Source: Macrostomum lignano
Taxonomy: Eukaryota
NCBI GenBank assembly: GCA_002269645.1
Contig: NIVC01000393.1
Location: forward strand, 545,497 to 609,496
Direction of reading: 5' to 3'
Length of the DNA stretch: 64,000 bases
Below are positions 26,601 through 38,600 of this stretch, one piece after another. The position numbers and the translations under genes were made by a program. The notes beneath the pieces were generated by a model that made no database searches, was not told the origin of the DNA, and saw only the letters and a program-made list of their open reading frames with translations. Position 1 is the first letter of the stretch. Each line of letters starts with the position of its first letter.

Positions 26601-29600
26601 CCAGCGGCACCAGCAGCCTCGGCTGTTGGCCAGTCGGTCTGGCAGACTGCTCGGCGCTGTTCACGAAGCTGACCCGATCGGCCGGCTGCAGGCGCACCGG
26701 CTCGCCTGGCTGCACAGTCACTGGCAATTCGTTCACTAGCACAGTCTCGTACGGGTCCACCCACACAACTTGCTGCCTCTGCTGCTCGGCCAGCGAGTAC
26801 ACGCAGATGACCTGATCGGCCGGGCTGTAGCACAGGCTGGACCCAACTTTGGCCTCCTGCATCGGCCCGATCAGGTGCAGCTCATTGGCGACTACCGGAG
26901 TCGCTTCTCCGTCGCGCACGATCGGAGTTTCGGCGTCCACACGACACCAGGATCGGCGAAGACGGCTCCAGCTGCTGGCGGCCCCGCGGGCCTCGTCGCT
27001 GCCACTGCGGTCGCGGCGCAGGAAGCGAATCTCGTTTGGCCTGGCCGAGGGCTGCCGTTCGCCGTCCAGCTGGATGGAGTCTCCGGGTTTCAGCATCGAG
27101 AGTGTCGCCGAATCATCGTCAGGCGGTTGATCGTTGATGAGCACTGCTTGGCGATCGGGATTGACGGTCAGGATCGAGACAGTCTCGTGGCTGATGCTGA
27201 GGGCATCGTCGGGCGTGCAGAATCTCTGGGCCCGGGGTGGCGCGGGTGCAGCAGAAGACTGCGACGGCTGAGGCGGCGGCGGCATCGCTTCGAGACGATG
27301 GAACGCAGCGTCGAGTTCGTTGGCGCCGCGGCTGGAGACAGCGAGATGCGGTCTGACCGGCTCCTCGTCTGGTGCCGCTGGCGACTGCTACGGTGGTTTT
27401 TTTAAAGATGAGAGACGGATTTTAAAACAAATTCCACAGCTTCCGGCTTTGAATATAAGCACATTGGGTTTGCTCAAGCACAGAGGTTCGCCTTCTGCTT
27501 CTGGTCTTTAACCTACTCGTACTGCTCGCTGGGTTGGTCTGAAACTATTCGCTTCTACCTCTGTCTGTCTCTCTCTCTCTATGCGCACAGTCGGGGGCAT
27601 TTATTAATTCTTGGCTTATTTATTGTTCATTCTCAAATTCGTCTGCATTATTGTCCGCAGCTCCTAACGAAAAACCCATGCAGTTTTAATTTATTCTACT
27701 ACTCGACCGCATCTTCATTCAGTCGGTTTGAAGTAAAAAAAGCTGCTATTTGAGTCAAGGCGTGTCTCACGTTCTATTTGCAGTGATGAGGTGGTGGCGG
27801 TCTGCTGGACAGAGACGCACACGAGCCTTTAGAGAAATAGAACACCCCAGGGTGTGCAGTTTGCGCACTATGTCGGCACCGAATACAGAGTACAATAAAC
27901 AACAGATCTTACATCAATTAGAAATTCCATACAGACTACCGAACTAAGTAGTAAGTAAAGAAGATAAAGCTCGTAGTTACCTGAGCGGCGCTGCGAGCCT
28001 CTAGCTGGGCCAGTTCGGCAGCCAGTCTCTCGTACTCGGGGTCCGACTCGGACAAGCCGCCAGTTGTTCGCAGCGTCTCCAATTCGTAGCGCAGAGTTTT
28101 CACGTTGCGCGCGAGTTCGAGCGACTCACGCTCGGCGGCTGCTGCGGCCACGCCTGCCCGGCTGGAGGCGCCGCTGCCGCGACCGCGGCCGGCCTTCAAC
28201 GCCGCGAGATCGTCGACGTCGGCCGCTGGGTACTGGGACTTTTTAGGAGACTCGCTAGCACTTCCTGCTGATACTGACTCGGACTCTGATGCCTCCTTAG
28301 CTGGCGACCCTTCCACACTTCTTACTGGAGAGGCCTCGAAACTCTGAGATTCTTTCGTAGGCGACGCGTCCGCGCTAGTAAGTGCCCTCGGTGGCGAAGC
28401 TTCGGCACTGACAAAGCTTGTGGCGGGTGAAGCTTCGAAACTTGGCGGCGCATCTCCTGTTTGTTGCGCTTCGATTGTTAAAGCGTCTCTGATCGGCGCT
28501 GCTTCAGCACTCGGTACCTCTCTTGTCGGTGACACTTCAGCACTCGGTACCTCTCTTGTCGGTGACACTTCAGCACTCAGTACCTCTCTTGTCGGCGATG
28601 CTTCAGCACTCGGTACCTCTCTTGTCGGCGATGCTTCAGCACTCAGTACCTCTCTTGTCGGTGACACTTCAGCACTCAGTACCTCTCTTGTCGGCGATGC
28701 TTCAGCACTCGGTACCTCTCTTGTCGGCGATGCTTCAGCACTCGGTACCTCTCTTGTCGGCGATGCTTCAGCACTCAGTACCTCTCTTGTCGGCGATGCT
28801 TCAGCACTCGGTAACTCTCTTATCGGCGATGCTTCAGCACTCGGTACCTCTCTTGTCGGCGATGCTTTAGCACTCAGTACCTCTCTTGTCGGCGATGCTT
28901 CAGCACTCGGTACCTCTCTTGTCGGCGATGCTTCAGCACTCGGTACCTCTCTTGTCGGCGATGCTTCAGCACTCAGTACCTCTCTTGTCGGCGATGCTTC
29001 AGCACTCGGTAACTCTCTTATCGGCGATGCTTCAGCACTCGGTACCTCTCTTGTCGGCGATGCTTCAGCACTCAGTACCTCTCTTGTCGGCGATGCTTCA
29101 GCACTCGGTACCTCTCTTGTCGGCGATGCTTCAGCACTCGGTACCTCTCTTGTCGGCGATGCTTCAGCACTCAGTACCTCTCTTGTCGGTGACACTTCAG
29201 CACTCGGTACCTCTCTTGTCGGCGATGCTTCAGCACTCAGTACCTCTCTTGTCGGTGACACTTCAGCACTCGGTACCTCTCTTGTCGGCGATGCTTCAGC
29301 ACTCAGTACCTCTCTTGTCGGCGATGCTTCAGCACTCGGTACCTCTCTTGTCGGCGATGCTTCAGCACTCAGTACCTCTCTTGTCGGCGATGCTTCAGCA
29401 CTCAGTACCTCTCTTGTCGGCGATGCTTCAGCACTCGGTACCTCTTTTTTCGGTGATGCTTCAGCACTCGGTACCTCTCTTGTCGGTGATATTTCAGCAC
29501 TCAGTACCTCTCTTGTCAAAGAAACATCAGCACTCGGTACCTCTCTTGTCAAAGAAACATCAGCACTCGGTACCTCTCTTGTCGGCGATGCTTCAGCACT

Positions 29601-35600: not shown

Positions 35601-38600
35601 GCCGAGGCCGAAGCGCTCATCCCGGAGCCCGGCGCCGAGGCTGTCCAACCGGGCTGTCAGGTCCTGACGGTACTCCAGCTCCGAGTCGACGGCAGCCTCC
35701 GATTGATTGAGCCGATCCTGGGCTCTTGATGATGATGAAAGAATGAAATGGAATATTGATTGCGGCAATAACAAAATTTTCTATGACGTGACTAACCGTG
35801 GCTAACTTGGCTTAACTTTCAGCGCCTGAAACAAATGTGAAACCCCAGTCTAGTAGCGATTATTAATGACGAATAAATTCTTACTCGGAAAATCGCTGCT
35901 CAACATCTGTAGCGCTGCGGTCAGCCTCCAGCATCGCGGCCGCGTCCGAACTCGACTGGACAAACTGCCGGCTCTGGTCGCGAAATTCGGACAGCCGGTG
36001 CTCGGCGGCTCGGAGCTGCTTCTTGGAATTCTAAGAATGCCGAAAGAGCGATAGGGGTGTTGAACTTGAGACCATATTACTGCTTGTTAATTAGTGCAAA
36101 TGCACGTAAATACTTTGAAGTTTGAAACTGCATAGCAACTGAGATCCTGGGAGGCTGGCCCAGCAACTGAGGATCTTCTGGGAGGTTGGCCCAGCAACTG
36201 AGGATCTGGGAGGCTGGCCCAGCAACTGAGGATCTGGGAGGCTGGCCCTGCAACTGAGGATCTGGGAGGCTGGCCCAGCAACTGAGGATCTGGGAGGCTG
36301 GCCCAGCAACTGAGGATCTGGAAGGCTGGCCCAGCAACTGAGGATCTTCTGGGAGGTTGGCCCAGGAACTGAGGATCTTGGAGGGTGGCGGTGGCCCAGT
36401 AACTGAGGAACTGGGAGGTTGTCATGTGGTCAAGTGATCATAACACTGAAAAATGCAAGCAAGTGCGCAGCGAAGTGCATGAGTGCATTGAAAGTACATT
36501 ACAGGTGTAAGTGCATTCTACACAACACCCCAATGAAACGGCAACTCTGCATAAGGGTGGCAAGGTAAGCAAAGGTGGAACTTCCTGCCTAAAAGCAAAG
36601 GAACACTCTCTTTCCCTCACAGCATGGATCGTGCAAAGCTACCAGCAAAATAGCAAAGCATAAGTGCAATGAATCAAAAGTCGTTAGTTACTAAGGCTAA
36701 GATAAAAATTTGAAAATTTATACAAGACCAAAACTTACCTCGATACTTATTTCTTCGCTAATAGCATAGGTTGACTAGAAAAGGTTAGCAAAACAAAGCA
36801 AGTTAGGTGTTTGTTATATAGCTACAAAACTCATTTTAGCGTGTTTAAAACTACTTATTAGATGACGAGGCTAAACATGTTCTAGTTTTACTCGCCGTTT
36901 ATCCAAACTGTTAATTGTAACGTTAAACTAATTAGAGTTAATTTAAACAAAAGTCAAACAAACGGACCTGAACTCTCCTGGCCCGCTCCTGAAGCTCCTG
37001 GCTGGACAGGCGCCCCAGGTCAGCCCCAGAGTCGCCGCCGGCCCCCGTAGCCGCCGAAGTCGCGGCTTCGATGGTTTCGTCCAGCGAATGTCGCCGATTG
37101 CGCAGGTCGCCGAGGCCGCCAGCCTCGCGGTGAAGCTGAGCGCGCTGGCGAACAACGGCCGACTGCAGATCGGCGAACCGGCTGAGCAGCTCCTCGGCCT
37201 GCTCGGAGACCCGCCGGCGGCTGGACAGGCCGCAGTGCCGCTGCAGCGAGTCGCCGGCCACCCGCAGATTATCCAGGCTGGCCTTCAGCGACTCGGTCTC
37301 GCGCAGCAGCGACTCAACGGAGTCGTCGTACGAGGCTGAGACCGAAGCGGAAGCGGAGGCTGTATCGCGCCATCTGCGCTCCGTCACCTCGAGGGTCTCC
37401 GTGACGCTGCGAACCACTCGCTGAAATTGTTGGGAGAAACAGAAGGAGATGAGAAGTGAATGGGGCTTCTCGGATGAAGCTTTGCGGCTGACGGAGATGG
37501 GAGGCTGGCCCAGCAGGCCAGCAACTGAGGATCTGGGAGGCTGGCCTAGCAACTGGGGATCTGAGAGGTTGGCCCAGCAACTGGGGATCTGAGAGGCTGG
37601 CCCAGCAACTGAGGATCTGGGAGGCTGGTGGCTCAGCAACTGGGGATCTGGGAGGCTGGCCCAGCAACTGGGGATCTGGGAGGCTGGCCCAGCAACTGGG
37701 GATCTGGGAGGCTGGCCCAGCAACTGAGGATCTGGGAGGCTGGCCCAGCAACTGGGGATCTGGGAGGCTGGCCCAGCAACTGAGGATCTGGGAGGCTGGC
37801 CCAGCAACTGGGGATCTGGGAGGCTGGCCCAGCAACTGGGGATCTAGGAGGCTGGCTCAGCAACTGGGGATCTGGGAGGCTGGCCCAGCAACTGGGGATC
37901 TGGGAGGCTGGCCCAGCAACTGGGGATCTGGGAGGCTGGCCCAGCAACTGGGGATCTGGGAGGTTGGCCCAGCAACTGGGGATCTGATAGGTTCGCCCAG
38001 CAACTGGGGATCTGAGAAGTTGGCCCAGAAACTGGGGATCTGGGAGGTTCGCCGAGCAACTGGGGATCTGGGAGGCTGGCCCAGCAACTGAGGATCTGGG
38101 AGGCTGGTGGCTCAGCAACTGGGGATCTGGGAGGCTGGCTCAGCAACTTAGGATCTGGGAGGCTGGCTCAGCAACTTAGGATCTGGGAGGCTGGCCCAGC
38201 AACTGGGGATCTGGGAGGCTGGCTCAGCAACTGGGGATCTGGGAGGCTGGCCCAGCAACTGGGGATCTGGGAGGCTGGCCCAGCAACTGGGGATCTGGGA
38301 GGCTGGCCCAGCAACTGGGGATCTGGGAGGCTGGCCCAGCAACTGGGGATCTGATAGGTTCGCCCAGCAACTGGGGATCTGAGAAGTTGGCCCAGAAACT
38401 GGGGATCTGGGAGGTTCGCCGAGCAACTGGGGATCTGGGAGGCTGGCCCAGCAACTGAGAATCTGGGAGGCTGGCTCAGCAACTGGGGATCTGGGAGGCT
38501 GGCTCAGCAACTGGGGATCTGGGAGGCTGGCTCAGCAACTTAGGATCTGGGAGGCTGGCTCAGCAACTGGGGATCTGGGAGGCTGGCTCAGCAACTGGGG

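Follow-up and report, generated by a model that had tools for sequence, protein, structure and literature searches.

Nesprins are usually seen as semi-rigid ropes of spectrin repeats, and nuclear mechanics has yet to settle what sets their length and compliance and whether either is regulated. In neurofilament tails, phosphorylation makes the side-arm more charged and is believed to extend it, and the stiffness of the titin PEVK segment is tuned by phosphorylation. Within the nesprin family, the C. elegans protein ANC-1 has six 903-aa repeats, required for nuclear anchorage (PMC8139857). Drosophila Msp300-PE and Msp300-PG contain two types of repeats of ~100 aa; Msp300-PE is required for the perinuclear microtubule-organizing centre, and its repeats are net negative, for which reason positively charged partners have been suggested for them (PMC11230431). 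Here we describe a tandem array of another kind in a 64,000-nt stretch of the Macrostomum lignano genome (contig NIVC01000393.1, positions 545,497 to 609,496, forward strand; hereafter the window). Our analysis indicates that positions 27981..35724, on the minus strand, are probably a genuine coding exon of the M. lignano nesprin-1/2 orthologue, into which several expansions of a coding minisatellite have inserted a long linker that is predicted to be disordered.

The M. lignano array resembles those of ANC-1 and Msp300 in that it belongs to the same gene family, is large and recently homogenised, lies in the cytoplasmic rod and is confined to one lineage; a net negative charge is shared with the Msp300 repeats as well. 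However, the units of ANC-1 and Msp300 are 100-900 residues long and predicted to form beta-sandwich or helical structures, whereas those of M. lignano comprise 8-16 residues, are predicted to be unstructured and centre on a proline-directed kinase motif. Neither for Macrostomum nesprins nor for PEVK-like segments of nesprins did our literature searches return a relevant paper. Tandem repeats confined to one lineage have precedents among nesprins; an array of short, predicted disordered phospho-motif units has none.

Boundaries, frame and anatomy of the giant exon

All coordinates given here are positions in the window, and residues are numbered from the first full codon of the giant exon (aa 1). 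On the minus strand, a single open frame of 2,612 codons spans 27936..35774. Within this frame the exon ends at the donor CAG/GTAACT, with 27981 as its final base. At the other end, a pyrimidine-rich tract is followed by two possible acceptors, which would place the initial exon base at 35724 (...CATCAAG/A) or at 35717. Use of 35717, by direct splicing from the phase-0 exon end at 36968, was considered and rejected because the 2-nt overhang of an intermediate exon of 146 nt fits 35724. This overhang, GA, is completed by the A at 35724 to a GAA (Glu) codon that sets the long open frame, and the coordinates 27981..35724 are therefore exact. Splice sites of the giant exon are canonical and in phase with both neighbouring exons. 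A preliminary description of this DNA had proposed a 7.7-kb exon of about 2,580 codons at exactly these positions; the length found here is 7,744 nt, with 2,581 full codons. The exon and the segments that it encodes are as follows.

27981..35724, minus strand: giant coding exon, 7,744 nt, made up of 1 nt completing the split Glu codon and 2,581 codons
35313..35723, minus strand: N-terminal helical-type segment, aa 1-137; no SP, Pro 4.4%, TOP-IDP 0.165, composition like that of the neighbouring spectrin exons
34824..35312, minus strand: unique basic, SP/TP-rich segment, predicted disordered, aa 138-300
34038..34823, minus strand: array A, aa 301-562; 33-bp units encoding an 11-residue repeat, with variants of 11 and 17 residues
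33843..34037, minus strand: linker 1, aa 563-627; 65 unique residues, Thr-rich, only the coding frame open
32178..33842, minus strand: array B, aa 628-1182; a 48-bp unit encoding a 16-mer, mixed with a 24-bp unit encoding the 8-mer SAEASP[V/A/M]Q
31581..32177, minus strand: linker 2, aa 1183-1381; 199 residues of degenerate old repeat copies
28512..31580, minus strand: array C, aa 1382-2404; 93 units of 33 bp with an 11-residue consensus, 87 S-P-x-K/R
28233..28511, minus strand: C-terminal degenerate copies, aa 2405-2497; 6 SP, five of them with K/R at +3
27981..28232, minus strand: C-terminal helical segment, aa 2498-2581; helices in the AlphaFold2 model

The arrays alone prove no coding function, because units that lack stops necessarily yield an open frame when repeated. 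Stops are likewise absent from the 741 non-repeat codons in the exon frame (P ~7e-12 from base composition), and none of the other frames is free of stops through all four unique segments, one reverse frame being open in linker 2 only. Together with the open frame and the canonical splice sites, these codons bear out the earlier view of a single large coding exon. Judged from the genomic sequence, inclusion of the giant exon in at least some mature mRNAs is likely. The 146-nt exon and the giant exon add up to 7,890 nt, and because this length is a multiple of three the two could be skipped as a pair without a frameshift.

Each of the three arrays has a period that preserves the frame (33, 24/48 and 33 bp in A, B and C, respectively), in line with the preliminary description, which had also put the largest array at about 92 units where we count 93. 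Array A contains 18 S-P-x-K/R motifs and was delimited by Tandem Repeats Finder (TRF) at 34035-34799, with a period of 33, 23 copies and an 81% match. Array B contains 50 SP motifs, 26 of which are S-P-x-K, and its TRF periods are 48 and 72. For array C, TRF reports 93.7 copies with a 91% match and 0% indels, and its units form an irregular mosaic of 21 distinct DNA types. A Pfam search with the N-terminal segment (aa 1-137) gave zero matches. The core SAEASP is common to all unit families, and the consensus unit of array A is identical to that of array C at 24 of 33 nt; for these reasons the central ~2,360 residues as a whole descend from a single ancestral unit of 11 residues, which was amplified three times or more. 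Probably a 33-bp unit encoding roughly P-S-A-E-A-S-P-x-[R/K]-x-V expanded several times as a coding minisatellite.

Nesprin identity, gene models and relatives

The exons that adjoin the giant exon are listed below, with their relation to two UniProt models of M. lignano, A0A1I8I875 and A0A1I8IEN6.

36968..37432, minus strand: upstream rod exon, donor CAG/GTCCGT, phase 0; 98% identical to residues 911-1065 of A0A1I8I875
35885..36030, minus strand: upstream 146-nt exon, encoded peptide ending in VEQRFS; acceptor TTCTTAG/AAT, donor GA/GTAAGA; present in A0A1I8I875
26260..27387, minus strand: downstream non-spectrin exon, 376 aa, predicted strand-type; spliced straight to the giant exon (...ARSAAQ/QSPAAP...) according to A0A1I8IEN6
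24343..25203, minus strand: next downstream exon, spectrin repeat (PF00435, 31 bits); A0A1I8IEN6 is 99.7% identical

The spectrin repeat family PF00435 was found above or near the cut-off in exons 60077-60580 (51.6 bits), 24244-25131, 19099-19539 and 7666-8163, and slightly under it in 16071-16889 and 11356-11874. The nesprin-specific spectrin repeat family PF25034 is the best family for 13888-14463 (27.8 bits) and 11356-11874 (33.9 bits), both below its gathering score of 35. We also carried out an exhaustive HMMER search with 1,175 aa spliced from the downstream exons. Among its 441 matches, the top ones are nesprin-1-like proteins of Owenia, Lingula and Branchiostoma and a KASH domain-containing protein of Patella, with E-values from 1e-117 to 1e-87; fish nesprin-1 follows at 5e-64, and Drosophila shot reaches only 2e-45. 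The leading matches, including vertebrate nesprin-1/2, align near their C-terminal rods. On the criteria tested, the gene is a nesprin-1/2 orthologue. With spectrin exons on both sides, the nesprin rod setting proposed in the preliminary description is upheld.

A0A1I8I875 covers eleven upstream exons, continues into the giant exon and stops in array A, while A0A1I8IEN6, 99% identical, runs from the last unit of array C to the end of the exon and on through eight downstream exons. Two independent models thus link the giant exon to spectrin exons on either side, and both break at the arrays. Compared with window positions 34316-35724, A0A1I8I875 uses an acceptor that lies 2 nt further downstream, with 35722 as its first exon base, and so starts out of frame; ~35 residues later it is back in the true frame, but it then passes through array A frame-shifted, in units whose order is unlike that of the window. 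This discrepancy could stem either from indel errors in the older assembly or from a second genome copy with a differently arranged array A. A coding variable number of tandem repeats with polymorphic protein length, as proposed earlier, is backed only indirectly, through this difference in unit order in an independent model of a second genome copy. The GenBank annotation of the Mlig_3_7 assembly discarded transcripts that overlap repeats (PMC5730564), which accounts for the absence or the breaks of the exon in public models. At present the gene is mis-modelled, as public annotations break or frameshift at the giant exon.

A0A1I8IEN6 carries the UniProt name 'FHA domain-containing protein', and the names of its sister fragments (SH3, PH) look like automatic labels. 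A phospho-binding module beside an array of phospho-motifs would be notable if true. An FHA identity was considered for the non-spectrin exon 26260-27387. Neither the exon nor three of its sub-segments matched any Pfam family at E <= 10; the sequences of the PDB gave no match, nor any FHA chain at E <= 10; and the AlphaFold2 model was unusable, with a predicted local distance difference test (pLDDT) of 35. The FHA identity is thus not supported, as it has only the automatic name of the UniProt model in its favour. The same exon displays a weak internal duplication (z = 3.9).

In the other 192 nesprin or spectraplakin relatives that we fetched, S-P-x-K/R occurs at most 16 times per protein and at most 7 times in any 200 aa. 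Some likeness was found in Owenia fusiformis (CAH1803082.1) and Elysia chlorotica (RUS76916.1), where S-P-x-R/K-rich linkers, predicted to be disordered, lie between spectrin repeats and resemble aa 138-300 of the giant exon. These linkers are located at residues ~2190-2320 of the Owenia protein and ~1740-1860 of the Elysia protein. In contrast to the M. lignano arrays they are ~100-150 residues long, basic and non-repetitive, stand elsewhere in the rod (C-terminal to the conserved block) and contain at most 7 motifs against 141. Small proline-directed phospho-linkers may be a wider feature of lophotrochozoan nesprins. A homologue search by word index, made with a conserved spectrin exon and with the C-terminus of the giant exon plus the next exon, returned nothing; it missed even the 99%-identical A0A1I8IEN6, and so is without evidential weight. 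Look-ups of the DNA behind A0A1I8IEN6, A0A1I8I875, the giant open frame and the neighbouring one matched no record. Two contigs of ENA ERZ22147071 (ctg28674l and ctg31108l) belong to a nesprin orthologue in a low-GC (39%) animal genome. Two exons are recognisable there at 54-56% identity, and the counterparts of window positions 7741-8070 and 6419-7075 form one continuous exon that no intron divides. As a comparison for the repeat exon these contigs were dropped, being too distant for a fast-evolving exon 20 kb upstream.

Phospho-motifs, possible constraint and predicted disorder

S/T-P-x-K/R is the full consensus of cyclin-dependent kinases (CDK), and the serine spacing of S-x-x-x-S-P is the priming geometry of GSK3. 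The giant exon encodes 174 SP dipeptides, 141 of them in S-P-x-[KR] (102 SPxR and 39 SPxK); 6.0 are expected from composition, and the maximum in 1,000 shuffles was 15. The motifs are clustered, reaching up to 10 per 100 residues within the 2,581 residues of the exon. The dominant motif is thus the full CDK consensus, as the preliminary description had claimed, and its hand estimate of ~130 was slightly low. SP occurs in 67 distinct contexts, 50 of which have K/R at +3. There are 149 S-x-x-x-S-P motifs, and a second serine stands four residues upstream in 131 of the 141 S-P-x-K/R sites. The cyclin-docking type motif [RK]-x-L has 10 matches in the exon, mostly within a rare 11-residue unit. Among the tryptic peptides expected from the exon, two of 11 residues are present in 29 and 22 copies. 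The encoded segment consists of Ser (19.6%), Ala (18.3%), Glu (13.5%), Pro (12.1%), Val (7.4%) and Lys (3.3%), among others, and its net charge is -138.

The segment shares with the tails of neurofilament proteins NF-H and NF-M a long repetitive sequence, predicted to be disordered and rich in Ser, Pro, Glu, Ala and Lys, with many S-P-x-K sites (the CDK5 consensus), and array B comes near to them in composition. However, KSP occurs only once in the entire giant exon, the dominant unit carries Arg and Glu (SPTRE), and a side-arm of an intermediate filament is not homologous to a linker in a spectrin-rod protein. The parallel with titin PEVK lies in a Pro/Glu-rich, low-complexity insert, predicted to be unstructured, in a giant modular mechanical protein, which would make it a plausible entropic spring. 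Here, though, P+E+V+K amount to 36% as against about 70%, Ser and Ala dominate, and the segment is one exon while PEVK is spread over many small ones; the giant exon matches neither PPAK nor any other Pfam family. Of the preliminary description, then, the exon, the nesprin rod, the in-frame arrays, the CDK consensus and the predicted disorder hold, and the neurofilament and PEVK analogies are looser than it stated: there is a single KSP, and a PEVK likeness by composition is not borne out.

The distribution of substitutions bears on the motif itself. In array C, none of the 93 units has lost the Ser of SP, which is written in three synonymous codons; R/K is likewise kept in all 93 and Pro in 87, while other positions vary in amino acid (A/V, P/L, T/P/I). 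In 12 degenerate copies from linker 2 and the C-terminal unique segment, SP is kept, with K/R at +3 in eight. That these old copies still mostly show S-P-x-K/R suggests that the motif has been under constraint while the repeats expanded several times, within the scope of one gene in one genome.

For the structure of the segment, one AlphaFold2 run was made in single-sequence mode on the final 400 residues of the giant exon. Confident helices (pLDDT 80-95) cover the last ~65 residues, at model residues 337-373 and 381-399. In array C and degenerate copies, by contrast, 320 residues show zero secondary structure and a pLDDT of ~40. The arrays contain 12-15% Pro, and their TOP-IDP values of 0.33-0.38 compare with 0.11-0.18 in the spectrin exons; a charge-hydropathy plot did not separate the arrays from the spectrin exons. 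With prolines spaced only five to six residues apart, the reasonable reading is a disordered chain. The preliminary description had proposed a disorder prediction as a check, and its outcome is that the arrays are predicted to be unstructured, Pro/Ser/Glu/Ala-rich and net acidic. The central segment of ~2,360 residues is very probably intrinsically disordered according to these predictions.

If so, an acidic disordered segment flanked by helical rod segments would interrupt the spectrin rod. Chain statistics suggest that it would form a long flexible tether, with a contour length of ~0.9 um and a relaxed size of ~30 nm, and the linker between nucleus and cytoskeleton would become locally compliant instead of rod-like. 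Multi-site phosphorylation at full occupancy could roughly triple the negative charge, which could alter extension, stiffness or partner binding. The chances that many of the SP sites are phosphorylated in vivo appear about even; that a CDK would be the main kinase is less likely than not, and that phosphorylation tunes the mechanics of the tether seems rather improbable. A 'phospho-tunable spring' is a reasonable hypothesis, not a finding. It would be a long shot to go further and propose a kinase-controlled extensible element of the LINC complex, which joins nucleoskeleton to cytoskeleton, in which the 141 CDK-type sites switch the coupling between a compliant and a stiff or extended state, perhaps in mitotic neoblasts or in muscle, and in which the adjacent non-spectrin module might read the phospho-repeats. 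Were this so, it would be the first nesprin in which the mechanics of the rod are set by a phospho-regulated disordered spring and not by spectrin repeats.

Minisatellite setting and alternative readings

Simple and tandem repeats account for 15% of the genome sequence in M. lignano (PMC5730564). The gene itself is unusually dense in minisatellites, with ~25 further intronic mini- and microsatellites in the window, of periods from 4 to 203 bp. About one third of these have periods divisible by 3, compared with all of the arrays in the exon. Examples are given below, together with two large minisatellites next to the giant exon.

7105-7686, 8370-9365, 15401-16035, 17801-19068, 43210-44268 and 62052-62828: intronic repeats
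49667-50442: intronic (AGAT)n, 194 copies
36134-36389 and 37518-38902: 28-bp intronic minisatellites just upstream of the giant exon, with ~9 and ~49 copies

The 28-bp minisatellites yield long spurious open reading frames (ORFs) on the gene strand. Another ORF, at 53457-54593 on the minus (gene) strand, has 378 codons starting with ATG and is of low complexity, rich in His, Gln, Pro, Ser and Arg. It has no Pfam match and no good donor near its 3' end; it may be a further nesprin exon of disordered type or a terminal exon used alternatively, or it may not code for protein.

In such a setting, the arrays could be a tolerated spacer produced by near-neutral minisatellite expansions, in which only the open frame and a soluble, unstructured peptide are constrained and S-P-x-K/R is abundant by founder chance. 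We regard this as doubtful, although the many other minisatellites of the window and of the genome speak for it. Array C is young or homogenised, as seen from its 91% match and from exact duplicated blocks of up to 263 bp; the non-synonymous variants noted above spread freely among its units; and the commonest 8-mers of array B are without K/R at +3. Against a mere spacer, SP persists, mostly with K/R at +3, in old degenerate copies that have drifted elsewhere; the Ser codon of array C varies synonymously only; and the motif has outlived at least three separate expansions of different unit length. The motif might also serve a docking scaffold and not a spring, that is, a multivalent platform for readers of phosphoserine-proline (Pin1-type WW, 14-3-3-like) or for positively charged cytoskeletal partners. 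In this case any proline-directed kinase (MAPK, GSK3, DYRK) or O-GlcNAc could modify the sites, and the neighbouring 'FHA' exon might read them. The 149 S-x-x-x-S-P motifs fit GSK3 priming, the net negative charge is like that of the Msp300-PE repeats (PMC11230431), and a non-spectrin exon, in a model with the FHA name, lies directly downstream; with the Pfam and PDB searches of that exon empty, its model unusable and the UniProt names apparently automatic, we consider a scaffold of this type rather unlikely on present sequence evidence.

Two further explanations concern the exon instead of its function. The arrays could be intronic minisatellites with a chance frame, or the exon a cassette mostly skipped with the 146-nt exon. 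Joint skipping would join the phase-0 boundaries 36968 and 27387 in frame, and the discarding of repeat-overlapping transcripts from the Mlig_3_7 annotation fits this idea. It is hard to reconcile with 741 unique codons that are open in the very frame set by the flanking splice phases while other frames are closed, with termini that are helical and rod-like, and with independent gene models that include both ends of the exon; we consider it improbable. Equally slight is the chance that the arrays are real and their lengths, in particular the 93 units of array C, have been inflated or collapsed in the assembly. M. lignano was hard to assemble, the sequenced line has duplicated chromosomes (PMC5730564), and both older gene models break at the arrays. 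Yet in array C the 21 unit variants follow one another irregularly, free of indels and of any long stretch of perfect periodicity, its longest exact duplicate is 263 bp, and at 3.1 kb it is well within long-read length.

The reading that we prefer, a coding exon with a disordered linker grown from minisatellite expansions, has points against it as well. Low pLDDT by itself is weak evidence of disorder, as the same method also scores low on the neighbouring, probably folded exon. The count of 141 motifs stems from a few founder units, so that the copies are not independent, and long-term conservation of the motif is judged solely from degenerate copies inside the same exon. Inclusion in mRNA is deduced from genomic sequence and predicted gene models; both models are partial, and A0A1I8I875 is out of frame in array A. 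Neither the KASH domain nor the CH domains fall within the window, as the gene continues past its low-coordinate end and its 5' end lies beyond 64000.

The giant exon illustrates how a minisatellite-prone genome can build a large new piece of protein when, within an exon, the unit lengths that survive are only those that preserve the frame. A segment of ~2,360 disordered residues, with a kinase motif for every 11 of them, would serve as a natural experiment on nesprin length and compliance and on their regulation, in an animal that is transparent, amenable to RNA interference and transgenesis, and rich in dividing stem cells.

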